Virus record (IMG/VR): IMGVR_UViG_3300044796_000657 | Span: 366,230-430,229 of that record | DNA: 64,000 nucleotides | Reading direction: 5' to 3' (one strand) | Shown here: piece by piece, positions 17,191-59,155 of the stretch | Position numbering within the stretch: position 1 is the stretch's first letter | Layout: each line of letters opens with the position of its first letter | Position numbers and translations under genes: made by a program | The notes under the pieces: generated by a model | The model's database searches: none | Told to the model about the DNA's origin: nothing | Seen by the model: only the letters and a program-made list of their open reading frames with translations

Positions 17191-17258
17191 GGGTCTACTT
17201 GCGGGCAAGCTCTGGGTTTTGCAAATCCGGCAACGGGGTTCAACTCCCCGTAGATCCA
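17191..17258 (+). tRNA. atypical tRNA-Ala(UGC)-like, compact D-arm
   Basis: Acceptor gggtcta/tagatcc with G3:U70 and A73; loop tt-tgc-aa; T-arm cgggg-ttcaact-ccccg. Confidence 0.6.
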
Positions 17259-17665: not shown

Positions 17666-17811
17666 CTTTGACTAACTCTGTGAAGCGGAGCGGTAGCATA
17701 ACCCCTACCGGTTTAATGAGTGTAGGCTGTGGCAGGCGAAATAACGCTAAGGCCAATGACACTTAACCTTTATCGTGACATTAAGATGATGATAAAGTGA
17801 ATGTCGAACAT

Positions 17812-20357: not shown

Positions 20358-20609
20358 ATGCCAGTAGAAAACGTGATGATTTGGGTGTTAACTATTGTTG
20401 CTGTTTTGTCGATGTTTGGAGCAGTAGCAGTAGTTTTAAACGTAGCAGAAAAGATTTCTCGCCGACGACAACGAAAAAAGTGTGAAATTGTTTTTGGTGG
20501 ACACTCTTACATTGAACTCTCTCATGGTAGACATTGTTGTTTTAGGTGTTTGACACTTCGAAGCAAATTACCCATTAGAGCCAAAATTGAAATCTTGATA
20601 GAGAAGTAA
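20358..20609 (+). CDS. small membrane protein
   Basis: N-terminal TM helix. Confidence 0.5.
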   Translation: MPVENVMIWVLTIVAVLSMFGAVAVVLNVAEKISRRRQRKKCEIVFGGHSYIELSHGRHCCFRCLTLRSKLPIRAKIEILIEK

Positions 20610-20934: not shown

Positions 20935-21114
20935 TGGAGATCGTCATGCAGTGTATTAATTGTAATAAAGAATGTGAATTTGATAGTCCTTATTTTCTTT
21001 GTCGTGAACACTGGATTGAATGGTTTGCCGAAAATACGGCAGATGATGAAATTCAATTAACACCACAAGAAATCATTGAATTCAAAAAAGAATTACAAGA
21101 AACAATTTGATTTT

Positions 21115-21188
21115 CGGGCGGTAGCTCAATTTGGTAGAGCGCCTGGTTTGGGACCAGGAGGTTGCAGGTTCAATTCCTGTCCGCCCGA
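21115..21188 (+). tRNA. tRNA-Pro(UGG)
   Basis: cctgg-tt-tgg-ga-ccagg; C1:G72. Confidence 0.92.
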
Positions 21189-21526
21189 CTGACTTTTACA
21201 GAATTTCGTATGTAACTACATTTTTAGGCAATGAATTGTTACATACACTACTCGTCAGTAAAAGTCTATTTTCTCATACCACCCTGATGTTGCAAAACGT
21301 GGCGGGTGGAATTTGTGAGACCGCTATCTTAATGTGTGATAGCAAAGAGAGTGAAAAGTGGAAGCCTCATAAGCGTTCATGCTCTGAAGTTAATAACTCA
21401 GATATAATAACTCTCTAATACGACGGGATGGCATCCTGTCGTGTGACAACATCTCAGAAACCTTAAACAAGTGGTCTGGCTTGCCCGCAAGGGAAGATCG
21501 GTTCAATTCCGATGTAGTTGTTTTTA

Positions 21527-21600
21527 GGCTCGTTCGTCTACGTTGGCTAGGACCGTTGTTTTTCAGGCAACAGAAGGCGGATCGTCACCGCCACGAGTCA
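21527..21600 (+). tRNA. tRNA-Glu(UUC)
   Basis: gttgt-tt-ttc-ag-gcaac. Confidence 0.85.
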
Positions 21601-21703
21601 TCGACCGAAAGGTCACAATACTGAGTTCTGTCACACAGAATACAACACCCGGAAGGGGAAGGGAAGTTAATAGCTTTCGCTCGACAATTTTTTGAGGTGC
21701 GTT

Positions 21704-22190: not shown

Positions 22191-22772
22191 ATGGAAACCT
22201 TTAAGCAGTTTTTTGAAGTTCAAAGTGGTGTCATTGTAGCTTATCACGGAACGCCCCACGGACTTTTTGATAAATTTGACGCATCAAAGCGTGGTGAAGG
22301 CGCTGACCAAGGCGACTTTGGCAATTATGGTAATGGTTTTTATTTTACCATTGATAAAGCAATGGCAATAAGGTATGCTAAAAAACTTACTGAACGCCAA
22401 ATTGGTAATCAGCCATATTTGTACACTGTCAATTTGAGAATATTCAAACCATTCTCTTTTGACAGGTTGCGTAATTATGAAAAAGACTTTTGGGATACAA
22501 TTAAGGCTAATCATGCGGCAGGAATGAAACACGGTTTGATAAACATTTCAAGTGAGCAAGAAAATGCTATAATGAAAAAGTATCAGACGACAGAAGATGA
22601 AATTGAGTTTATGAAGTGGTTAGAGTCGAAGATGAATGACAATTGGGAAGATGTGAACTTCGCACAAATATTGAAAAAGAAAAGATATGATAGTGTTGTG
22701 ATCAAAGGCGGCGAAGAAATAGTCGTCTTTGACGAACATCAAATACAGATAATCAAAAGAGAACCAGTATGA
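22191..22772 (+). CDS. ADP-ribosyltransferase-like protein
   Basis: AYHGT, FDKFD, YGNGFYFT, C-terminal EEIVVF. Confidence 0.7.
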   Translation: METFKQFFEVQSGVIVAYHGTPHGLFDKFDASKRGEGADQGDFGNYGNGFYFTIDKAMAIRYAKKLTERQIGNQPYLYTVNLRIFKPFSFDRLRNYEKDFWDTIKANHAAGMKHGLINISSEQENAIMKKYQTTEDEIEFMKWLESKMNDNWEDVNFAQILKKKRYDSVVIKGGEEIVVFDEHQIQIIKREPV

Positions 22773-23126: not shown

Positions 23127-23266
23127 TTTGAGTTATGTTTGGTTAACCAGCATCGTTTGGAAGCAACGAAGCATAACTTGATTTTTTGTCCAACGTCAGT
23201 GATTAAAAAGTAGCTAAGCCCGATGCGAAGAGGCAAACGCTTACTGTTCAGACGTTGTGCTTTTTT

Positions 23267-23287
23267 GCGGGGATAGCTCAATTGGTA
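23267..23287 (+). pseudogene. 5' fragment of a tRNA
   Basis: gcgggga-ta-gctc-aattggta, then no continuation. Confidence 0.55.
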
Positions 23288-23321
23288 TATTGGTTGTTAG
23301 AAAAGCTTTAATAGATTTGAG

Positions 23322-24653: not shown

Positions 24654-24733
24654 GAATATAGGTCGTTTTAAGTCAGTTAAGACTCCGTCAATCGTCTGTT
24701 GCCGGAATAGAGGTTCAAATCCTCTCCTATTCA
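24654..24733 (+). ncRNA. tRNA-like RNA with extended anticodon arm
   Basis: T-arm agagg-ttcaaat-cctct; bulged acceptor gaata(ta)gg/cctattc; 13-nt anticodon region. Confidence 0.45.
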
Positions 24734-27305: not shown

Positions 27306-27324
27306 TCTTGGCAAAGGAAACGCC

Positions 27325-27507
27325 ATGCAAACCGCACCGTTAGGTCATTGGATAGCATTTTTCCTTTCCATGATCACATTGATATTTTTATCAGTGGTTC
27401 CAGCAACCGATTTATCAGTTAATCAAAAACTGATTACTGCTGTTTATTTATTTCTATTTGGCCTTATTGGATTTCTAATTGGGCGAATTGGAACAAAAAA
27501 AGATTGA
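27325..27507 (+). CDS. small two-TM membrane protein
   Basis: Two hydrophobic helices. Confidence 0.55.
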   Translation: MQTAPLGHWIAFFLSMITLIFLSVVPATDLSVNQKLITAVYLFLFGLIGFLIGRIGTKKD

Positions 27508-27532
27508 CTTTCTGTAATGATGCGGGTATAGT
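27504..27532 (+). promoter_or_regulatory. sigma70-type promoter
   Basis: TTGACT-17 nt-TATAGT upstream of the GlyRS-like gene. Confidence 0.65.
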
Positions 27533-27584
27533 ATCTCTATGAAACCCGGCTAGACCAAGGCCGATACTTTATGAGGATTTTGCG

Positions 27585-30889: not shown

Positions 30890-30996
30890 CTGGTTGTAGT
30901 TTATCGACGGTTAAAATTACAATTAGGGAAAACGTGACTAATCCAAGTTATGTTGCCCATATAATTGAGAAACGGGTTCAAATCCCGTCAGCCAGA
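30890..30996 (+). ncRNA. tRNA-like RNA with long extended anticodon arm
   Basis: ctggttg/cagccag acceptor, D-loop GG, T-arm acggg-ttcaaat-cccgt, long irregular middle stem. Confidence 0.65.
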
Positions 30997-33644: not shown

Positions 33645-33718
33645 GGGCCTATAGTTCAACCGGGGAGAACATCCAACAGGAATGTTGGAAGGTCGAGGTT
33701 CAAATCCTCATAAGCCCA
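33645..33718 (+). ncRNA. tRNA-like RNA with GGAA-capped 7-bp arm instead of a 7-nt anticodon loop
   Basis: gggccta/taagccc, D-arm gttc/gaac, tccaaca-ggaa-tgttgga, T-arm. Confidence 0.7.
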
Positions 33719-33722
33719 CTTT

Positions 33723-34837: not shown

Positions 34838-35165
34838 CGGCAGTGTTCAATTTCTTTATCAACTTTGAAAGTTAATGTGATTTATGGCTCGTCCTCCTGA
34901 ATTTGATAAACACGCAGAATTAATTACTGATTACATTCGTAAGATGGGACTTTACGGGGTAACGCAAGAAATTCGCTTTGCTTTAACTGCTATTTTTGTC
35001 AACGATATTAATGATGATGAATTGTTTCATAAAGTAATGAAAGCATTGGAATCTTTCCAAGACGAATTAGGTAAAATTCAAGAAGATCGTATGAGTAATA
35101 GGAAAAAAGATCAACCTATTTATCCAATTGGGACAGTTATCGGGACTTTAGCATAACGGCAGTGT
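34822..35165 (+). repeat. 25-bp direct repeat of a tRNA 5' end (34822-34846 and 35141-35165)
   Basis: cgggactttagcataacggcagtgt occurs twice. Confidence 0.9.
34884..35156 (+). CDS. hypothetical protein between the repeats
   Basis: Ends GTLA in the second repeat. Confidence 0.6.
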   Translation: MARPPEFDKHAELITDYIRKMGLYGVTQEIRFALTAIFVNDINDDELFHKVMKALESFQDELGKIQEDRMSNRKKDQPIYPIGTVIGTLA

Positions 35166-35223
35166 GTTCCGGTAAGACCTACGTGGTTCCGGAATGGTAA
35201 GAGTTCGACTCTCTTAAGTTCCA
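35142..35223 (+). ncRNA. tRNA-like RNA with enlarged anticodon region
   Basis: gggactt/aagttcc, D-arm, ttccgg-16 nt-ccggaa, T-arm aagag-ttcgact-ctctt. Confidence 0.7.
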
Positions 35224-44107: not shown

Positions 44108-44569
44108 ATGGAAGTTCACATCAGATCGCATAAAGAAGCATTGGCAATGATTGTTGCCAAGCCGAATACGTACGATGTGATTTTCATCAATGAGCCGTAT
44201 TTCGGTGTTGATGCGATATTTAAACAAAAATCTCGCAGCTTAACAACTCACTTTTTCCATGATCTTGAAAGACCTATCAAGGGAAGAAGGATGCCAAAAT
44301 ACAACGACGTTAAGGCAATGTTGGATTTTGTAGATAAGAAATCCAACATTCTCTGCTGTTGTCCAAGTGGAATTTCTCGCAGCGCAGCCATTGGGTATGC
44401 TGTTACGTGTATGAAATTTTACAACCCCGAAGCGGCCTTGAAAATTTTAGATTATGATAAGCATATTCCCAATGTATTAATTTCACAATACGCAAGTGAA
44501 ATTTTACAAAAACCAGACATACTCGGTCGCATCAATCGGTTTAGAGAAGGTGTTTTTTCCACCCTATAA
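44108..44569 (+). CDS. protein-tyrosine/dual-specificity phosphatase-like protein
   Basis: CCCPSGISRSAA (Cx5R), FFHD, HIPN. Confidence 0.8.
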   Translation: MEVHIRSHKEALAMIVAKPNTYDVIFINEPYFGVDAIFKQKSRSLTTHFFHDLERPIKGRRMPKYNDVKAMLDFVDKKSNILCCCPSGISRSAAIGYAVTCMKFYNPEAALKILDYDKHIPNVLISQYASEILQKPDILGRINRFREGVFSTL

Positions 44570-44582
44570 AGGCAAGATTAAT

Positions 44583-45863
44583 ATGTCCATGCTCGCCGAA
44601 GCTAAACAGCAATTAGAAGCCGCTTACAAATATGCTTCCATTGATCCTGAATCGTGGGAGCGTCTTCAACACCCCCAAAGAACCATACAATGTGCCATTC
44701 CTATGAGGCACGATGATGGGGTACTTCAAGTTTACAAAGCGTACAGATGTCAATACGACACGACATTGGGGCCAGCAAAGGGCGGCATTCGCTACCATCC
44801 ACACGTTGACCGTGACCATTGTGAAGCATTAGCCTTCTGGATGACTTTCAAGTGTGCTGCTGTTAAGATTCCTTTCGGTGGGGCAAAAGGTGGAATTGCC
44901 GTTGATGCCAAGAGTCTTTCCCACCGAGAATTGGAACGATTGAGCAAAGCTTACATTGATGCTTTCGCCGATGTGATTGGCCCGGACATTGATATTCCGG
45001 CACCTGATATGTATACCGACGAACGGACGATGGGTTGGATGTACAGCGAATACCGCAAGATCAAGGGCGGTCATCCCAAAGATATGATTACTGGTAAGCC
45101 GACTGCTTTGGGTGGCATTGAAGGCCGACACAGTGCTACAGGATACGGTGGCTTTTTCGTCTTGGATACAATTCTGAAGCAATACGCAAGTCAAATCAAT
45201 TTGAAGTTAAGTGAAGGCCAAAAAACCATTGCCTTACAGGGATTTGGTAAGGTCGGTACTTGGCTTGCCGAAAAGGCTTGGGAGCAAGGATACAAAGTTG
45301 TTGCGATCACTAATGAATTTGGCGGTGTATATGAACCCAAACACGGTTTACATATTCCTACTGCCAAAGCCGCACAAGAAGAATCGGGCGGTAAGAGTTG
45401 GGGTGTCCACGCAGCGGAAACATCTGTTATCACCAATGAAGATTTGTTAGCTTTGGATGTTGACGTTCTTGTCCCTGCCGCAATGGAACGAGTGATTACA
45501 GACAAGAATGCGAATGCTGTACAGGCCAAGATTATTTTGGAGCTTGCCAACGGCCCGACTACGAATGCGGCTGATACCATTTTGAATGATCGTGGAATTT
45601 TTGTTATCCCAGACATTTTGGCGAATGCCGGTGGGGTGGTTGTCAGTTATTTTGAATGGGTGCAAAACAGAGGTGGCATCGTTAAGTCACTAGAAGAAGT
45701 GAATAAGGAATTACGTACGGTTATGTTGGGAGCAACGAACAAAGCGATGGATCGATTACTGGAATTCAAAATCCCGCTTAGGACAGCAACGTACGCATTA
45801 GCTTTGAAGCGTATCGGAATGGCTAATGAGAGCCTTGGCGTGAGGCAGTATTTCAGGAAATAA
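44583..45863 (+). CDS. gdhA: Glu/Leu/Phe/Val dehydrogenase (glutamate dehydrogenase)
   Basis: GPAKGGIRY, GGAKGG, DIPAPD, ITGKP, QGFGKVG, ELANGP, ANAGGV. Confidence 0.93.
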   Translation: MSMLAEAKQQLEAAYKYASIDPESWERLQHPQRTIQCAIPMRHDDGVLQVYKAYRCQYDTTLGPAKGGIRYHPHVDRDHCEALAFWMTFKCAAVKIPFGGAKGGIAVDAKSLSHRELERLSKAYIDAFADVIGPDIDIPAPDMYTDERTMGWMYSEYRKIKGGHPKDMITGKPTALGGIEGRHSATGYGGFFVLDTILKQYASQINLKLSEGQKTIALQGFGKVGTWLAEKAWEQGYKVVAITNEFGGVYEPKHGLHIPTAKAAQEESGGKSWGVHAAETSVITNEDLLALDVDVLVPAAMERVITDKNANAVQAKIILELANGPTTNAADTILNDRGIFVIPDILANAGGVVVSYFEWVQNRGGIVKSLEEVNKELRTVMLGATNKAMDRLLEFKIPLRTATYALALKRIGMANESLGVRQYFRK

Positions 45864-47000: not shown

Positions 47001-49838
47001 ATGAATCTTGACCCTAACACTCGTGAACAAGAAGTTCTCAAATTGTGGAAGGGTCAAGATACGTTTCAGGCGATTCAATTTCGTCGGAAATCGGCTAAGC
47101 CTTTTGTGATGTTTGAAGGCCCGCCAACCGCCAATGGCAAACCCGGCATCCATCACGTTCTCACCCGCACATTTAAAGATGCAATCGCACGCTTCCAAAC
47201 CATGAAAGGCCGTTACGTTGAACGACGGGCCGGATGGGATGAACACGGATTGCCAGTAGAATTAGAAGTCCAAAAAGCCTACGGACTCCCCACCAAAGAA
47301 TCCATTCTCGATTACGGTGTTGCTGAATTTAATAACAACTGCCAAGTCAGCACCCGCAACTTCATCGCCGATTGGGAAAAATTAACCCACCGAATGGGTT
47401 ATTGGCTCGATTTTGAAAACGCCTATAACACATCAGATCCTAGTTATATCAACAAAGTTTGGACAGTCTTAGATAATCTCATGGCTAATGATGAGATTTA
47501 TCAAGACTATAAAATCGTGCCTTGGGCTTGCGATTCCCAAACCGTCTTATCCAATTCAGAATTAGAACAAGGTTATAAAGAGGTTGAACACAATACGATG
47601 ACGGTTAAATTCCGCATCGATGATGACACCAATACCTATCTGATCGCATGGACAACTACCCCTTGGACATTGCCAGCTAATATGGCTTTAGCAGTCAATC
47701 CTTCGTTAACATATTACGAAACCATTGACTCAGAGGGGTGCCATTGCATTAGCCTCAAAAAAACCGAACCCTCATTACCAATCAGTGGCCACAAACTTGT
47801 CGGCCTAAAATATCGTCACCCATTTATCTCTGGTAAGGTCTGTCAAGTCTATGGCGACAACTTCGTTAGAGGCGATACAGGAACCGGAATTGTACATATC
47901 GCACCTGCTTTTGGCATTGATGATTACGCTCTTTGGAAAAAGAGTATGGCCCTTGAGCCAATCATCTGTCACGTAAATCCGGATGGTTCTTTCAACGCAG
48001 CAGCTCCAGACTTGCTGCGAGGCATCAATTTGTTGGACAGAAATTTCAAAACTGTTAACTCTTTAATTCATGCCCACTTGACTTCGGCAGGAGCAAACTA
48101 CGAAAATCAATCCTTCAAGGATTCGGGATTTACACATCAATACCCGCACAATTGGCGAACGGGTAAGCCTCTTATCTATATGTTTAGACATAGTTGGTTC
48201 GTGAAAACAACCGGCCTCAAACTTCGTCAAGTTAACAAAGAAGAAGTGACTTGGTATCCTAGTAATATCAAAGAAGGTAGATTTGGACAATGGCTTGATG
48301 GTGGCAAAGATTGGGCAATTTCCCGTGAACGATTTTGGGGTACACCGTTGCCCTTTTATCGTGATGCTGACAATAACGTCTCTTTCCAAGTCCCTCAATA
48401 TTATCACAAGCCGGGTTCTGATACGCCCATCGTCAAAGATAGAGTAATCTGGAAACGAACCTCAGAAGTTTTGGACTGCTGGTTCGATAGTGGCGCAATG
48501 CCGTTTGCCGCTTATGAGAAGTTCCAGCCAGCCGATGTAATTTGTGAGGGCATCGATCAAACCCGTGGGTGGTTCTATTCGTTAATGGTTATTGGTGTTG
48601 CTCTCACAGAACATACGCCATTCAAGGCAGCGATTTGCCTCGGCCATGTTCTGGATAAGAACGGCGTGAAAATGAGCAAGTCCAAAAAGAATGCTGTTGA
48701 TCCTTGGGAAGTTTTTGAGCGAGAAGGCGCTGATGCCGTTCGTTGGTACATGCTCAAAACACCAATCGGACAATCTCTTTTGTGGAATGAAGCCGAAGTT
48801 AAAAAAGTCAATCAAACATTCTTCAATCGCTTGCTTAGCTCTCTTGACTTTTACGAGCAACAACAAAACCCCGACAAGCCTCATCGATCTAGTAATGGGT
48901 CAAAAGATGCTACGGATATTTGGATGATGGCACGCCTACACAGTGTTGTTAACAGCGTATCCCAATATTTGGAAGATTATGAATTTGCCAAAGCGATTGA
49001 AGCCATTGAGCTTTTTACCAACGATCTTTCTAATGTTTGGATTAGAACAAATCGATCACGATTCCTTGCTGATGGTGCCCATGTTCCTAACGGTATTTTG
49101 AAAAACTGCCTAAAAACACTAACATTGTTAATTGCACCGTTGGCGCCGATGTTGGCTGAACATGTCTGGTATCGTTTGTGTCCAGAAAACATTGTTTATG
49201 GAAGCATGGGTTCGGTACATGCTACCGATTGGCCTAAACCAGAAGATAATACGTGGGACGCATTCTCAAAAAATATTGTTATTCTTGAAGCCATGAAAGA
49301 AGCTCGTCAAGTTATCACTGAAGGCTTGAAACAGAGAGACAAGCGGAATATCCGTTTGAGGCAACCGATCAAAGCAGTGCGGGTGCCTCGTAACATCAAT
49401 CCACAACTCATTCAATTCGTCAAGACGGAGTTGAATGTTAAAGACATCATCGTTGATGCTAAGGGGGAATCCGTGGAAATGGATTTCAACCTTACGGATG
49501 AACTTGTAGCGGAAGGTATGGCAAGAGATTTGATGCGGGCTATTCAAGTTCGCCGCAAAGATTTAGGTTTGAAGCGTGGTGAACCAATTCGTATCGTATT
49601 GGAAGTCGATAAAAAGACCAGATCCATGCTTGAACCACATATGAGTGAGTTGATGTTAAGTGTGACTTGTGGTGATCTGCGATACAAAGAAGTCGCAGAT
49701 ACAGCATCGCCGATTGTAATGGAAGTCACAAAAATGGAACCGGCTAACCCAGATGGCTATAAGGAATTCGGAAAAGCCACAACAAAACTGACTTCTGCTG
49801 AAATCGCCAAAGTGATATTGACAAATCGTGTCGGTTAA
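47001..49838 (+). CDS. ileS: isoleucyl-tRNA synthetase (type 2-like)
   Basis: FEGPPTANGKPGIHH, GWDEHGLP, WTTTPWTL, GTGIVH, DWAISRERFWG, EGIDQTRGWF, KMSKS. Confidence 0.93.
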   Translation: MNLDPNTREQEVLKLWKGQDTFQAIQFRRKSAKPFVMFEGPPTANGKPGIHHVLTRTFKDAIARFQTMKGRYVERRAGWDEHGLPVELEVQKAYGLPTKESILDYGVAEFNNNCQVSTRNFIADWEKLTHRMGYWLDFENAYNTSDPSYINKVWTVLDNLMANDEIYQDYKIVPWACDSQTVLSNSELEQGYKEVEHNTMTVKFRIDDDTNTYLIAWTTTPWTLPANMALAVNPSLTYYETIDSEGCHCISLKKTEPSLPISGHKLVGLKYRHPFISGKVCQVYGDNFVRGDTGTGIVHIAPAFGIDDYALWKKSMALEPIICHVNPDGSFNAAAPDLLRGINLLDRNFKTVNSLIHAHLTSAGANYENQSFKDSGFTHQYPHNWRTGKPLIYMFRHSWFVKTTGLKLRQVNKEEVTWYPSNIKEGRFGQWLDGGKDWAISRERFWGTPLPFYRDADNNVSFQVPQYYHKPGSDTPIVKDRVIWKRTSEVLDCWFDSGAMPFAAYEKFQPADVICEGIDQTRGWFYSLMVIGVALTEHTPFKAAICLGHVLDKNGVKMSKSKKNAVDPWEVFEREGADAVRWYMLKTPIGQSLLWNEAEVKKVNQTFFNRLLSSLDFYEQQQNPDKPHRSSNGSKDATDIWMMARLHSVVNSVSQYLEDYEFAKAIEAIELFTNDLSNVWIRTNRSRFLADGAHVPNGILKNCLKTLTLLIAPLAPMLAEHVWYRLCPENIVYGSMGSVHATDWPKPEDNTWDAFSKNIVILEAMKEARQVITEGLKQRDKRNIRLRQPIKAVRVPRNINPQLIQFVKTELNVKDIIVDAKGESVEMDFNLTDELVAEGMARDLMRAIQVRRKDLGLKRGEPIRIVLEVDKKTRSMLEPHMSELMLSVTCGDLRYKEVADTASPIVMEVTKMEPANPDGYKEFGKATTKLTSAEIAKVILTNRVG

Positions 49839-49876: not shown

Positions 49877-51313
49877 ATGAAAAAGGCAGAATTAGTAGAA
49901 GCAGGCATTCCCGTGAATTGCCATGCTGCTGCCATTAAGGTCATTCAAGATGGCTTCCGGCACAAAATCTTCCCTTCCAACAAAGGGGCACGGGAAGCTT
50001 TAACGAGAGTGGCCGCTGCGCCTGAAATGCACCTCGGCGCAGACGACTTCTACCGAGAATTGGCAAGCACCATCATTGCCACCCGCAAACAGCACGTTGA
50101 AGACGAAGCTCTTTACGCCAAAAACAGCATTGGTACAAGCCAATCGTTTGCCTCTTGGGGTGCCGACATTGAACAAGGTGCCATTGATCAAATGCAAAAT
50201 GCGGTATCCCTGCCAGTTTCAGTGGTCGGCGCCATGATGCCCGATGCCCACAGTGGGTACGGTTTGCCCGTAGGCGGTGTTCTGGCCACATACGACAGCA
50301 TCGTTCCTTATGCGGTAGGCGTCGATATTGGTTGCCGGATGCGTTTTACGTTCACCGATATCGATCCATCACTCCTCAAGGATTCTCACGACAAGAAGGC
50401 GACTCCGCTCTGTAAAGCCTTGCGTGAAGGAACGGTTTTTGGCGTCGGCGGTCAACACGAAATTAAGATGAACCATCCAGTCATGGACAAGGATTGGAAC
50501 ATCACGGCTGTCACAAAAGCCGCCAAAGATAAGGCATGGCGGCAGTTGGGAACCAGCGGTTCCGGCAATCACTTCGCCGAATGGGGCATTGTGACGTTAA
50601 CTCAAAAAGAATTCGGTTTAGAGCCGGGGAAATACGTCGCTCTCATGACTCACAGCGGCTCCCGTGGTTCGGGTTCTGATGTTTGTAGTTACTATACCGA
50701 CGTTGCCGCTTCCAAGCTGCCAAAGGCTTATGAGAAATTCGGCAAAATGAAATTGGCGTGGTTGCCAATGGCTTCCGAAGCTGGCCAAGAGTATTGGGCA
50801 GCTATGAACCTTATGGGTGATTATGCCGCTGCCAATCACTACGTCATTCACGAATTGGTTCTCAAGAATATGGGAGCAACGGCCCTTAAAGTGATTGAGA
50901 ACCACCACAATTTCGCATGGAAAGAAGATTACAAGGGAACCGAAGTGTACGTTCACCGTAAAGGTGCTACACCTGCCGGAAAGGGCGTACTGGGTATTAT
51001 CCCCGGTAGTATGGCCACTTCCGCATTCGTCGTACGAGGCAAGGGCAATCCTGAAAGCTTGATGTCGGCTTCTCACGGTGCCGGGCGGGCAATGAGCCGC
51101 ACCAAAGCTAAGGAACAGTTTAACTGGAGCACATGGAAGAGCCAAATCCAAAATGCCGGTGTACGACTATTGAGCGGCGGGATTGATGAGGTTCCCGGTG
51201 CTTACAAAGACATTCACAAAGTCATGGCTCAACAAACCGACTTGATTGATGTTGTGGCAGAATTCATGCCCAAAATCGTCCTCATGGGTCAAGATGGTCG
51301 GAGCGAAGATTAA
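49877..51313 (+). CDS. rtcB: RtcB RNA ligase
   Basis: PDAHSGYGLPVGG, GVDIGC, GSGNHF, HSGSRG, HHNFA, HRKGAT, PGSM, SASHGAGR, DEVPGAYK. Confidence 0.95.
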   Translation: MKKAELVEAGIPVNCHAAAIKVIQDGFRHKIFPSNKGAREALTRVAAAPEMHLGADDFYRELASTIIATRKQHVEDEALYAKNSIGTSQSFASWGADIEQGAIDQMQNAVSLPVSVVGAMMPDAHSGYGLPVGGVLATYDSIVPYAVGVDIGCRMRFTFTDIDPSLLKDSHDKKATPLCKALREGTVFGVGGQHEIKMNHPVMDKDWNITAVTKAAKDKAWRQLGTSGSGNHFAEWGIVTLTQKEFGLEPGKYVALMTHSGSRGSGSDVCSYYTDVAASKLPKAYEKFGKMKLAWLPMASEAGQEYWAAMNLMGDYAAANHYVIHELVLKNMGATALKVIENHHNFAWKEDYKGTEVYVHRKGATPAGKGVLGIIPGSMATSAFVVRGKGNPESLMSASHGAGRAMSRTKAKEQFNWSTWKSQIQNAGVRLLSGGIDEVPGAYKDIHKVMAQQTDLIDVVAEFMPKIVLMGQDGRSED

Positions 51314-52749: not shown

Positions 52750-54741
52750 ATGAACAGTCAATTTGGTTTTGTCTGCGTTGGAGCAGGTTCGTCACGTGTT
52801 TCAGTCGGCAACCCCGTCTATAACGCCGATGAAACCATTGCTCTGATACGCAGAATGAAAGATTGTGATATTGTGGTTCTCCAAGAGTTGGGGATCACTG
52901 GCTACACTTGTCGCAATCTTTTCAGTCAAGAGCTTCTTATTAACTCTGCTGCACAGCAGGTTCAACGTGTCGCCGAAGCAACCAATTGGGTCAAAAATGG
53001 GATTCCCCCTCAATTGGTCTTTGTAGGCTGTCCCATATACGTTAACAACAATCTGTACAATTGCGCCGTAGCGATCCAAGACGGCGAAGTGATCGGTATC
53101 GTCCCGAAGCAGCACCTTCCCAATTACAAGGAATTTGAAGAAACTCGTTGGTTTCAACCCGGTTCTTCTAAGTTGCCACAATCCATTAAGTGGCAAGGCG
53201 AAACCGTCCCATTTGGCACTGATCTCCTATTTGACTTCGGCAACAATGTTGTCGTCGGTGTGGAAATTTGTGAAGATTTGTGGATGCCTATTCCGCCTAG
53301 TTCCCATCAGGCACAAGCGGGCGCAACCATTTTAGTTAACCTTTCGGCGTCCAATGAAACGGTTGCCAAAGCAGACTACCGTCGTGATTTGGTAGTTGGA
53401 CAATCTGGCCGATGTATTGCCGCATACGTTTATTCGTCTGCCGGGCCTTCCGAATCGACAACAGACTTGATTTTCGGCGGTCACTGTATGATTGCCGAAA
53501 ATGGGAGCCTCTTGAAACAGTCCAAGAGAGTTGGCGATGGATCAAAGCTGTCGTTCAATTCGCACTTCATCATGGGTGATGTTGATGTGCAAAAGATTAT
53601 GTTTGAGAGACGGCAAACTACAAGCTATGGCCAAGAAGTCAGGTTGAACTACCGCAGAATTAACGTTCGCTCACGACAAAAAACCAAAACATTACATCGC
53701 ACCATTGACAGTATGCCATTTGTTCCCAAAGACTCTGGTAAACTCAATGAACGATGTACGGAAATTTTCGCCTATCAAGTGGCCGGTCTTGCTTGTCGTC
53801 TCAACAGAATAGGACGCTACAATCCTGTGATCGGTGTTTCGGGTGGTTTAGACTCCACTTTGGCGTTGCTTGTGTTAGCGAAAACGTTCGAAGCTCTTGG
53901 TATTGATCCCGGCAAGATCCAAGGAATCACGATGCCCGGTTTCGGTACCACCAGCCGGACGCTTGACAACGCTAAAAAGCTGATGGATCAATTGAAAATC
54001 AGCCAAACGACCATTGACGTTTGTCATTTGAGTTTGGAAACATTCCGTCAGATGGGACACAAACCTTTCGGACTTTCGCCTTATCTGGAAATGGATAAAT
54101 TTAAAGAAGCACTCAAAGGTTTAAAGAAACAAGATCGTCATGATCTTGTTTTTGAGAACGTTCAAGCGAGAGTGCGAACCCACTTCCTAATGAATCAGGG
54201 CTTCGTCGTTGGCACTGGCGACTTAACCGAAGCAGCGTTGGGTTGGTGCACGTTCAATGCTGACCATATGAGTATGTACAACCCCAATTGCTCTGTACCA
54301 AAGACATTGGTCAAGTTCCTAGTCAAATGGGCCGCTGAAAACGAATTCGACGGCAAAACACAAAAAACCCTGCTCGATATTGTTGATACGGAAATTTCGC
54401 CCGAATTGTTGCCGGTGGACAATGAGGGGAAAGCTCAATCTACCCAAGATACGTTGGGGGCTTTTGAGTTACATGACTTTTTCCTATTCAACATTATTCG
54501 GAATGGATTTTCACCGGATAAAGTGTTATTCTTAGCGGAATATGCCTTTGACGGTGCTTACAAAAAAGAAGTTATTCACAAGACGTTGAAGTTATTTTAT
54601 GAAAAATTCTTCCGCAATCAGTTCAAACGAAATTGCGTTCCCGATGGTGTTAAAGTTGGATCTGTGAGTTTGTCGCCCCGTGGTGATTGGCGAATGTCTT
54701 CCGACTCCGATCCCACTCTTTGGCTTAAGGAGCTACAGTAA
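52750..54741 (+). CDS. nadE: glutamine-dependent NAD+ synthetase
   Basis: Nitrilase-like domain (QELGITGY, PKQHLPNY, EICEDLW), GVSGGLDSTL, ENVQARVR, GTGDLTE. Confidence 0.95.
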   Translation: MNSQFGFVCVGAGSSRVSVGNPVYNADETIALIRRMKDCDIVVLQELGITGYTCRNLFSQELLINSAAQQVQRVAEATNWVKNGIPPQLVFVGCPIYVNNNLYNCAVAIQDGEVIGIVPKQHLPNYKEFEETRWFQPGSSKLPQSIKWQGETVPFGTDLLFDFGNNVVVGVEICEDLWMPIPPSSHQAQAGATILVNLSASNETVAKADYRRDLVVGQSGRCIAAYVYSSAGPSESTTDLIFGGHCMIAENGSLLKQSKRVGDGSKLSFNSHFIMGDVDVQKIMFERRQTTSYGQEVRLNYRRINVRSRQKTKTLHRTIDSMPFVPKDSGKLNERCTEIFAYQVAGLACRLNRIGRYNPVIGVSGGLDSTLALLVLAKTFEALGIDPGKIQGITMPGFGTTSRTLDNAKKLMDQLKISQTTIDVCHLSLETFRQMGHKPFGLSPYLEMDKFKEALKGLKKQDRHDLVFENVQARVRTHFLMNQGFVVGTGDLTEAALGWCTFNADHMSMYNPNCSVPKTLVKFLVKWAAENEFDGKTQKTLLDIVDTEISPELLPVDNEGKAQSTQDTLGAFELHDFFLFNIIRNGFSPDKVLFLAEYAFDGAYKKEVIHKTLKLFYEKFFRNQFKRNCVPDGVKVGSVSLSPRGDWRMSSDSDPTLWLKELQ

Positions 54742-56957: not shown

Positions 56958-57248
56958 ATGAATCTTGAACTTTGCGCCTCGTTCGCCGAAGCTGTGTTTC
57001 CCGCCGACGCTGTCGCCCGTGAGAACCTTTTCGAAAACGCCAAGTTGGGCCGCTTCAAAGACTTCGATGAAGCCATCATGCAGCAAGCTGTGGACTTCTA
57101 TGCTGAAGGCGTCAGATCGGGTGGTGTTAAGTTCCCCACTCTGTTCTGCCAAGATGTTCAGGCCGCTCTCCCAACCCACGACAAACAGAACTTCAAGATC
57201 CTTGCGCACGTCGCCCAATGCGAATGCTGCCAGCAAAAAGTCAGCTAA
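56958..57248 (+). CDS. hypothetical protein
   Basis: GGAG SD; GC-richer codon usage. Confidence 0.6.
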   Translation: MNLELCASFAEAVFPADAVARENLFENAKLGRFKDFDEAIMQQAVDFYAEGVRSGGVKFPTLFCQDVQAALPTHDKQNFKILAHVAQCECCQQKVS

Positions 57249-57252
57249 GTAG

Positions 57253-57381
57253 GTATCCGGTGTGAGCATGGGACTCACTCCTGTAGGTATTACTGGACTT
57301 GGGATAGACCCAAGCTGCTCGAAAGGCGGAAGACCGGTGCAACTCCGGAAATGACAAAAGGTTCGATTCCTTTCGGATGCT
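57253..57381 (+). ncRNA. tRNA-like RNA with multi-hairpin insert replacing the anticodon arm
   Basis: gtatccg/cggatgc, gtgag/ctcac D-like arm, three internal hairpins, T-arm aaagg-ttcgatt-ccttt. Confidence 0.6.
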
Positions 57382-57385
57382 ACTT

Positions 57386-57691
57386 ATGAAACCTCGCATC
57401 ATGTATGTTGAAAACAAAGCGACCGGCGAAGCTCATATCGGAAGAGTGAGCTTTTCTAAAACCGGTCGCACGGTTTACTACAACAGCAAAAGCCTATCCA
57501 ATCTTGGCGGAAGAGGCTTTAAAGCCAATCACTACGACATTGACACACACGAAGAGTATTGGGTGTCCGGGCCTCACAAAGATGGCAATGACAAACTGTA
57601 CGGTGGACAGAAGGGCGTTGTAATAGACGCCGACGTTTGGGACGAGTATTGGATAGAGATAAGGGGATTGAAAGAGATTCCCAAACGTTAA
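57386..57691 (+). CDS. conserved-looking hypothetical protein
   Basis: RIMYVENK..GRVSFSKTGRTVYY..YWVSGP. Confidence 0.65.
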   Translation: MKPRIMYVENKATGEAHIGRVSFSKTGRTVYYNSKSLSNLGGRGFKANHYDIDTHEEYWVSGPHKDGNDKLYGGQKGVVIDADVWDEYWIEIRGLKEIPKR

Positions 57692-58450: not shown

Positions 58451-58526
58451 GCCTTCGTAATGGCCCCGGTTTCTACCCGGAAGGTGCATAACTGGAATTA
58501 TACAGGTTCGACTCCTGTCGAGGGTG
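58451..58526 (+). tRNA. D-armless tRNA-Arg(UCU)-like with long variable arm
   Basis: gccttcg/cgagggt; 7-nt linker; ccgg-tt-tct-ac-ccgg; T-arm acagg-ttcgact-cctgt. Confidence 0.6.
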
Positions 58527-58836: not shown

Positions 58837-58841
58837 ACTTC

Positions 58842-58870
58842 AAAAAACCCGGTTTTAGCCGGGTTTTTTT
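58842..58870 (+). terminator. intrinsic terminator
   Basis: aaaaaacccgg-ttttag-ccgggtttttttt. Confidence 0.85.
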
Positions 58871-58885
58871 ACTTCATGGTGATAT

Positions 58886-59152
58886 ATGGAAATTGTTTGG
58901 ATATTGGCTTATTTGGTCTTTAATTTCACAATGGTGTTGTTTTTAGTTCGCTATAATTTAATTTCTAAAAAAGATTGCCTTCCGGTGTTATTAGCGTGGC
59001 CGTATTTAGTTTTGATGACAGTTGTTACGATATTAGCGGTCTTGATATCGATGCCATTTATGGTATTATATAGCTTAACAGCTCAACGTTGGTTGGGCGG
59101 CATTAATGATGTCTTATGGCGACTAGGAAGTCGTCATTCTGATCAAGGATAG
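58886..59152 (+). CDS. small membrane protein
   Basis: Hydrophobic helices. Confidence 0.55.
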   Translation: MEIVWILAYLVFNFTMVLFLVRYNLISKKDCLPVLLAWPYLVLMTVVTILAVLISMPFMVLYSLTAQRWLGGINDVLWRLGSRHSDQG

Positions 59153-59155
59153 CAA

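Follow-up and report, generated by a model that had tools for sequence, protein, structure and literature searches.

A strongly structured, probably non-coding element with a tRNA-like 3′ module in the tRNA array of a megaphage

INTRODUCTION

Two tRNA genes on the same strand of a phage genome from a peat metagenome, tRNA-Pro(UGG) (21115–21189, +) and tRNA-Glu(UUC) (21527–21600, +), are separated by a gap that is filled by the element described here (337 nt, 21190–21526, +). They lie in the window, the whole stretch of DNA analysed (64,000 nt of IMG/VR record IMGVR_UViG_3300044796_000657), in which ARAGORN finds 33 tRNAs, of which nearly all fall on the + strand in the interval 17.4–61.4 kb. 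Coordinates are window positions (64 kb; record G000:C1:366230–430229) unless marked G000 or L002. The element is a real, strongly structured and probably non-coding part of the tRNA operon of this megaphage, with a tRNA-like module at its 3′ end.

The 5′ border of the element is the 3′ end of tRNA-Pro, a gene found by the Rfam tRNA model (71.7 bits), by ARAGORN and by R1 (70.8 bits), a covariance model prepared from 24 tRNAs of the phage and searched over 16.5–62.5 kb with filters off. The 3′ border would be defined by the RNase P site of tRNA-Glu, where a U-rich spacer of 4–6 nt lies. This second gene has the non-canonical T-loop AUCGUCA; it is reported by ARAGORN and by R1 (34.6 bits) and not by Rfam, even at E≤10. 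tRNA-Pro has no encoded CCA, nor is CCA encoded in the tRNA genes of the phage, which encodes an enzyme of the PolyA_pol/CCA-adding family.

A first-pass annotation, made by a model from the letters, had described about 330 nt of nested helices here, forming one or two large non-coding RNAs that end in a tRNA-like T-arm. Every string that it quoted is present where it was placed.

PREDICTED FOLD

The predicted fold presents the region as a string of five local domains (H1–H5, ~257 nt) followed by a four-way junction of 75–78 nt (H6), all on the + strand. H1 (21191–21266) is a 76-nt hairpin (−20 kcal/mol) with two 9-bp stems around an internal loop and a 21-nt apical region. Its outer stem GACUUUUAC/GUAAAAGUC (21191–99/21258–66) has a pair probability (p) of 0.99 in the partition function and its inner stem GUAUGUAAC/GUUACAUAC (21208–16/21238–46) one of 0.97; with ~20 stacked pairs, H1 is a possible RNase III-type processing site. 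H2 (21272–21320; −22.5 kcal/mol, p 0.85–1.0) pairs UCUCAUACCACCC... with ...GGGUGG..UGUGAGA and is capped by AUGUU-GCAA-AACGU, a GNRA tetraloop. H3 (21323–21343) is the hairpin GCUAUC-UUAAUGUGU-GAUAGC (p 1.0), with its stem (G)CUAUC/GAUAG(C) at 21323–28/21338–43.

H4 (21346–21416; −16.1 kcal/mol) is a 71-nt three-way junction, in which two small hairpins (p 0.5–0.65) are held within a 7-bp closing stem, AGAGAGU/ACUCUCU (21346–52/21410–16, p 0.93); one inner hairpin is UCUGA/UCAGA (21383–87/21398–402, p 0.51). H5 (21418–21444; −16.6 kcal/mol, p at least 0.77) is a near-perfect 12-bp hairpin, AUACGACGGGAU-GGC-AUCCUGUCGUGU, whose strands are 21418–29 and 21433–44.

H6 (21445–21522) is a tRNA-sized four-way junction in both the minimum free energy and the centroid structure. 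Its acceptor-like helix joins 21445–21453 with 21514–21522 through the pairs G.U, A-U, C-G, A-U, A-U and C-G, the mismatches A.A and U.U, and then C-G, and directly abuts the T-arm. Between the acceptor-like strands, arm A (21454–21479, UCAGA/UCUGG with a 16-nt loop) and arm B (21480–21496, CUU-G-CCC-GCAA-GGG-AAG, with CCC/GGG at 21484–86/21491–93, p 0.96) follow with zero linker nucleotides. The GCAA tetraloop of arm B brings those in the element to two.

Eight of the ten helices of the first-pass annotation recur in the predicted ensemble (p 0.5–1.0). The two that do not are ctgatgttg/caacatc, which had been taken to close a second domain, and gcgg/ccgc. Forcing the former yields −87.2 against −103.0 kcal/mol, a cost of 15.8, and the latter is displaced, with GGCGGGUGG pairing with CCACCC in a stronger local hairpin capped by GCAA. 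A two-domain architecture with long-range closure is disfavoured thermodynamically; local domains plus a tRNA-like four-way junction fit better.

Fold statistics were obtained with dinucleotide shuffles. The 338-nt stretch 21189–21526 folds at −103 kcal/mol, against −78.9 ± 4.7 when shuffled (z −5.17, 0 of 100 shuffles as good), and the H1–H5 segment (21190–21446, 257 nt) reaches z −6.39, a value equalled by none of 200 shuffles. The reverse complement is 15 kcal/mol weaker (−88 kcal/mol, z −3.26), an asymmetry of the kind expected when the + strand, on which the tRNAs lie, makes use of G.U pairs. Among 19 non-coding gaps of the tRNA region, surveyed crudely, none has a better energy density than the element (−30.6 kcal/mol per 100 nt), which ranks second by z.

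THE tRNA-LIKE END

What the first pass had seen as a tRNA-like T-arm at the end of the region is a genuine one of tRNA type, the canonical AUCGG-UUCAAUU-CCGAU (21497–21513, +; p 0.93), with a loop identical to that of tRNA-Pro. As in a tRNA, the arm has a 5-bp stem and a UUCRANY loop and adjoins a closing helix, on which it would stack. When T-arm motifs (5-bp stem, G-C closing pair, TTCRANN loop) were sought outside the annotated tRNAs, eight such orphan T-arms were found on the + strand of the 64-kb window, none on its − strand and 10 in the other 366 kb on both strands. These counts place orphan T-arms in strong concentration in the tRNA array, and put the likelihood of a chance T-arm in a given 337-nt stretch at ~0.5%.

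R1 matches the T-arm of the element alone (model positions 48–64, 12.8 bits, E 0.054 in 46 kb), and for this reason we do not regard the element as a tRNA; a full cloverleaf was found at H6 neither by R1 nor by the Rfam tRNA model at E≤10. T-arm-only matches of this kind number three in the array: 30968–30988 (15.4 bits), 57357–57373 (14.2 bits) and the element (12.8 bits). The first two fall in intergenic elements at 30890–30996 (+; 106 nt, z −2.9) and 57246–57386 (+; ~140 nt, z −2.5), in which the 3′ strand of a closing stem comes directly after the T-arm, its 5′ strand lies 100–130 nt upstream, and long or extra hairpins replace the D and anticodon arms. They resemble siblings of the species I RNA of phage T4, discussed below. 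H6 has the same geometry, a T-arm and then the 3′ strand of a closing stem, and the two T-arm-only elements with their abutting closing stems suggest a recurring design in the phage.

No known family accounts for the element. When 21100–21700 was compared by cmscan with 4,227 Rfam families at E≤10, tRNA-Pro came out together with four matches at chance level and nothing else, and at gathering thresholds the whole window yielded tRNAs only. The comparison with Rfam suggested in the first pass came back empty for tmRNA, 6S, group I intron and RNase P RNA alike (E≤10). Of its claim of one or two large non-coding RNAs, the families named did not stand; that the region looks structured and non-coding, probably as one or two molecules, did.

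HOMOLOGUES AND EXPRESSION

A blastn search against 50,697 phage records of GenBank matched in the adjoining tRNA-Pro only, and pattern scans of IMG/VR, JGI metagenomes and GTDB genomes gave no diverged homologue. Within the 430-kb genome, neither blastn at word size 7 nor nhmmer detected a paralogue. Identical copies stand in three independent assemblies of this phage; being 100% identical across the region, they offer no variation for comparison.

Neighbouring genes were also followed as leads. The class I aminoacyl-tRNA synthetase led to no related loci, a 459-aa neighbour protein matched itself only, and a 280-aa neighbour has homologues in bacterial contexts. The one informative neighbour, an ART-PolyVal ADP-ribosyltransferase encoded 670 nt downstream of the element (22191–22772), has 50% identical copies in ENA phage contigs of 550–777 kb, where tRNAs and the element are absent within 10 kb of it.

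One peat metatranscriptome holds 81% of the words sampled from 19–24 kb. In its assembly, a 1,577-nt contig spans 21133–22709, at a depth similar to that of neighbouring contigs.

COMPARISON WITH PHAGE T4 AND A PROPOSED PATHWAY

The nearest known counterpart is the pair of species I and II RNAs of phage T4, where the primary transcript of the tRNA cluster (~1.75 kb) is the precursor of eight tRNAs and of these two RNAs (PMC2330249). In the T4 annotation, species II (rnaD, 119 nt) and species I (rnaC, 139 nt) come directly after tRNA-Arg. The predicted fold of rnaC (z −4.6) has long hairpins and then a T-arm, CCGGG-UUCGAAU-CCCGG, which abuts a seven-position closing stem, CGAUUCG/CGUUUCG, with two central U.U mismatches. 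H6 shares with it a T-arm beside an imperfect closing stem with two mismatches; the T4 order of a tRNA, a structured RNA lacking a T-arm and an RNA with one is that of tRNA-Pro, H1–H5 and H6 here; and in both phages the RNAs are inside a tRNA cluster, on the tRNA strand and adjoining a tRNA. The differences are that the element has no sequence similarity to rnaC or rnaD (blastn: tRNA-Pro only), measures 337 nt against 258 nt for species I and II together, and is flanked by a tRNA on either side, the T4 pair being the last in its cluster. Moreover, the T4 RNAs accumulate as stable species, whereas the element is known from sequence and predicted fold.

On the general principle of processing handles such as that of MALAT1–mascRNA, a module shaped like a tRNA could recruit RNase P and so define the end of a longer structured RNA upstream. 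Maturation of a tRNA-like 3′ end in MALAT1 is the subject of a published study (PMC8457004). The element resembles that system in its pairing of such a module with a longer RNA, with any RNase P role at H6 being hypothetical, and differs from it in that MALAT1–mascRNA is eukaryotic, nuclear and without homology to the element.

We judge the chances about even that the element represents one or more processed non-coding RNAs of the T4 species I/II kind, bearing a tRNA-like handle and cut from the transcript of the tRNA operon. For this reading stand its position, strand bias, fold stability, T-arm, absence from known families and low coding potential. Also in its favour are the two other T-arm-only elements, the T4 precedent, a YrlA RNA that RNase P cuts and that is given CCA, the CCA-adding-type enzyme of a phage whose tRNAs have no encoded CCA, and the metatranscriptome contig across the element. 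Co-transcription, cleavage sites, stability and any function are what we infer, in the following scheme. The element would be transcribed together with tRNA-Pro and tRNA-Glu as part of a polycistronic tRNA operon. RNase P would cut 5′ of tRNA-Glu and possibly 5′ of H6; the 3′ end would then be trimmed, and the phage nucleotidyltransferase of CCA-adding type would act on the acceptor/T-arm minihelix of H6. RNase III and RNase E might find sites in the extended duplex of H1 and in linkers rich in A and U. One or two discrete small RNAs, resistant to nucleases, would result and would parallel T4 species II and species I; in them the tRNA-like handle would supply processing, 3′-end protection and access to tRNA-binding proteins, with H1–H5 as cargo.

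ALTERNATIVE EXPLANATIONS

Several results weigh against a processed RNA. Other gaps of the tRNA array are clearly structured too: the putative non-coding gaps 58837–59155, 27306–27584, 23127–23321 and 17667–17811 (all +) fold strongly, at z −3.0 to −4.5 (30 shuffles). High structure may therefore be a general property of the spacers in this array and not the mark of a gene. Taken alone, H6 folds no better than its shuffles (z −1.1), two mismatches interrupt its acceptor-like helix, which also has no G3:U70, and its T-arm is weak by itself (12.8 bits; E >1 genome-wide). The element is a singleton in all collections searched, with identical copies only, and because no diverged homologue was found, its helices rest on thermodynamics, unaided by covariation. 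Contigs of even depth from an RNA library cannot separate a transcript from carried-over DNA or show its ends. Finally, a gene caller placed a 60-aa open reading frame (ORF) inside the element.

Much of this would suit the strongest competitor, a spacer with a decayed tRNA gene, which we consider possible though clearly less probable than a processed RNA. H6 would then be a relic that keeps the T-arm and part of the acceptor stem; H1–H5 would be incidental or would act in cis, as processing sites or insulation, and the excised material would be degraded and without function. H6 is the size of a tRNA, sits in a tRNA array and has the T-loop of tRNA-Pro, yet R1 recognises only its T-arm; its acceptor helix is mismatched and its stability unremarkable, the other spacers are structured as well, and the element is an unconserved singleton. 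The array also contains tRNA-like sequences, degenerate or non-canonical, whose scores grade from 47 to 12 bits. What random decay should leave, however, is exceeded by a z of −6.4 over 257 nt together with the strand asymmetry, and two GCAA tetraloops and a near-perfect 12-bp hairpin likewise speak against decay, as does the precedent of T4, where RNAs of the tRNA cluster do accumulate as stable species.

That the element is instead a small protein gene, its hairpins being structure in an mRNA, seems to us unlikely. The JGI gene caller annotated a 60-codon ORF (21236–21418, +) in an open frame with a TTG start and AGG 8 nt upstream; this ORF is probably spurious. Its codon score of 0.087 ranks at the 3.5th percentile among true coding pieces from this genome and is exceeded by another frame of the same stretch, whereas five neighbouring genes in their true frames score 0.22–0.41 (the sixth, ORF 20358–20609, scores 0.076). 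It has no Pfam or PHROG match, and the 44-codon version that begins at an internal ATG (21287) lacks a Shine-Dalgarno sequence, unlike the neighbouring genes, which have GGAG or GAGG. The ORF is moreover buried in stems with pair probabilities of 0.9–1.0 and spans only about half of the structured stretch. The coding potential of the element is low.

That the element is a far-diverged representative of some known family, be it a tmRNA (an additional or a two-piece one), a Y RNA of the YrlA type for the Ro protein of the phage, a T-box-like tRNA sensor or an intron-bearing tRNA, is suggested by the T-arm near the 3′ end, by the Ro/TROVE protein and RtcB of the phage, by an intron-containing tRNA that ARAGORN can force on 21407–21522 and by the GGGUGG...ACCGC of the element, which we take to be a faint reminder of a T-box motif, and it is highly improbable in view of the empty Rfam and ARAGORN tmRNA searches and of the results for each candidate that follow.

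The element is like a tmRNA in its ~300 nt and in having an acceptor-type 3′ strand after the T-arm, and tmRNAs encoded by phages are known. It differs in having no G3:U70, no detectable tag reading frame, no pseudoknots and no match in Rfam at E≤10 or in ARAGORN -m, even at the relaxed 80% threshold. Paired with CAACAUC (21447) or with UAACUAC (21213), the 3′ strand GUAGUUG gives A3-U70 in place of the identity pair. A tmRNA-like closure of UAACUAC (21213–19) with GUAGUUG (21514–20) costs +10.4 kcal/mol and destroys H1; by our estimate, about one such 7-mer pairing is expected by chance per 330 nt. Outside the window, ARAGORN finds a canonical tmRNA with the tag VEPELRMAA* (G000 131045–131411, −). 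An SmpB gene was not found in the 430-kb record.

6S RNA, group I and II introns, RNase P RNA and T-boxes were rejected for lack of an Rfam match at E≤10, as were the recently described tRNA mimics in Rfam; the element folds into consecutive local hairpins instead of a single long duplex with bulges. Downstream of the element there is also no aminoacyl-tRNA synthetase or amino-acid gene, as a T-box requires. The intron tRNA is a tRNA-Thr with a 20-nt intron that ARAGORN, at a threshold of 85%, forces on 21407–21522; it is unconvincing, since its acceptor is mismatched and its D arm irregular. An artefact on the minus strand came up at the same threshold.

The Y RNA reading was rejected on grounds of location. 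YrlA genes lie at most about 4 kb from the Ro gene and on the same strand, and RNase P cleaves a YrlA RNA that has a 7-bp acceptor stem and T-arm and to which CCA is added (PMC4201824). The element shares with YrlA a tRNA-type T-arm on a non-coding RNA, in a phage that encodes TROVE/Ro and RtcB; a D-arm mimic is not recognised in it by R1. It lies at G000 387.4 kb on the + strand, however, 145 kb from the TROVE/Ro ORF (537 aa; L002:742–2355, about G000 242.05–243.67 kb, −) and on the opposite strand. A better candidate for a YrlA-like Y RNA is found just downstream of the Ro ORF on the same strand (G000 ~241,930–242,050, L002:620–735, −), where a long hairpin, the T-arm GAUGG-UUCAAUU-CCAUC and a hairpin that resembles a terminator and has a run of U follow one another. 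The tRNA model gives it 17.9 bits at 241976–242045; it has no Rfam match.

OTHER tRNA-LIKE GENES IN THE ARRAY

Four of the orphan T-arms belong, by the R1 search, to full-length non-canonical tRNA or tRNA-like genes missed by ARAGORN. An unannotated tRNA-Ala(UGC) (17191–17258, +; R1 26.6 bits), which also escapes the Rfam gathering score, has the acceptor GGGUCUA/UAGAUCC with G3:U70, the anticodon loop UUUGCAA and a reduced D arm. A tRNA-like gene at 35142–35223 (+; 47.3 bits) has the acceptor GGGACUU/AAGUUCC, again with G3:U70 (alanine identity), and normal D and T arms, with an 18-nt loop in place of the 7-nt anticodon loop; judged by this sequence, it may accept alanine without decoding, or may be a tRNA into which a small insertion or intron has come. 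Two weaker full-length matches, directly after tRNA-Arg(CCU) (58451–58526, +; 27.1 bits) and directly after tRNA-Gly (24656–24733, +; 17.8 bits), have 7-bp-like acceptor stems and irregular inner arms.

A further tRNA (33645–33719, +) is reported by ARAGORN as ‘tRNA-??? (ggaa)’ and scores 46–47 bits with both tRNA models. From its 8-nt anticodon loop, CAGGAAUG, it could be a four-base decoder or a frameshift-type tRNA. Standard tRNA finders thus miss several non-canonical tRNAs here, including the sole tRNA-Ala, without which the genome would seem to have none; this bears on claims about how complete the tRNA sets of phages are.

THE PHAGE

The source record (430,229 bp, an IMG/VR ‘provirus’) was cut from a 614,480-bp contig of a JGI peat metagenome. 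The 3′ end of the window (64000) is the called provirus boundary, and the contig continues for another ~184 kb. The record encodes a large terminase, whose nearest relatives have 46–48% identity among 1.8 billion representatives and 25–26% in IMG/VR. Since the closest terminases reach 46–48% only, the phage is, by this marker, an isolated lineage.

Within the tRNA region lie genes, all on the + strand, for glutamate dehydrogenase (44496–45863), the class I aminoacyl-tRNA synthetase of Ile/Val/Leu type (47001–49838), the RNA ligase RtcB (49877–51313) and a glutamine-dependent NAD synthetase (52750–54741). Judged from its gene content, the source is an uncultured giant phage that carries a sizeable module of genes related to translation.

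IMPLICATIONS

Giant phages carry near-complete tRNA sets along with genes for translation and RNA repair, and the non-tRNA RNAs of their arrays are essentially unannotated. A broader idea, which we regard as speculative and rather doubtful, is that this phage carries an undescribed set of ‘tRNA-handle’ RNAs, each joining structured cargo to a minimal acceptor/T-arm module, with the element as the largest. Its members may be the element, the T-arm elements at 30.9 and 57.3 kb, the alanine-identity RNA with the 18-nt loop and the Ro-adjacent RNA. If they exist, these RNAs would make use of tRNA maturation, of CCA addition or of proteins that bind tRNAs; some might be decoys for host defences that target tRNAs, or might guide or tether RNA-repair enzymes of the phage such as RtcB and Ro.

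Should a stable RNA indeed be processed from the element, what T4 shows with species I and II, unexplained for ~50 years, would hold for a megaphage lineage unrelated to T4 as well. A general design would then also be indicated, in which structured cargo is joined to a minimal tRNA handle and which annotation pipelines overlook or take for a small ORF.

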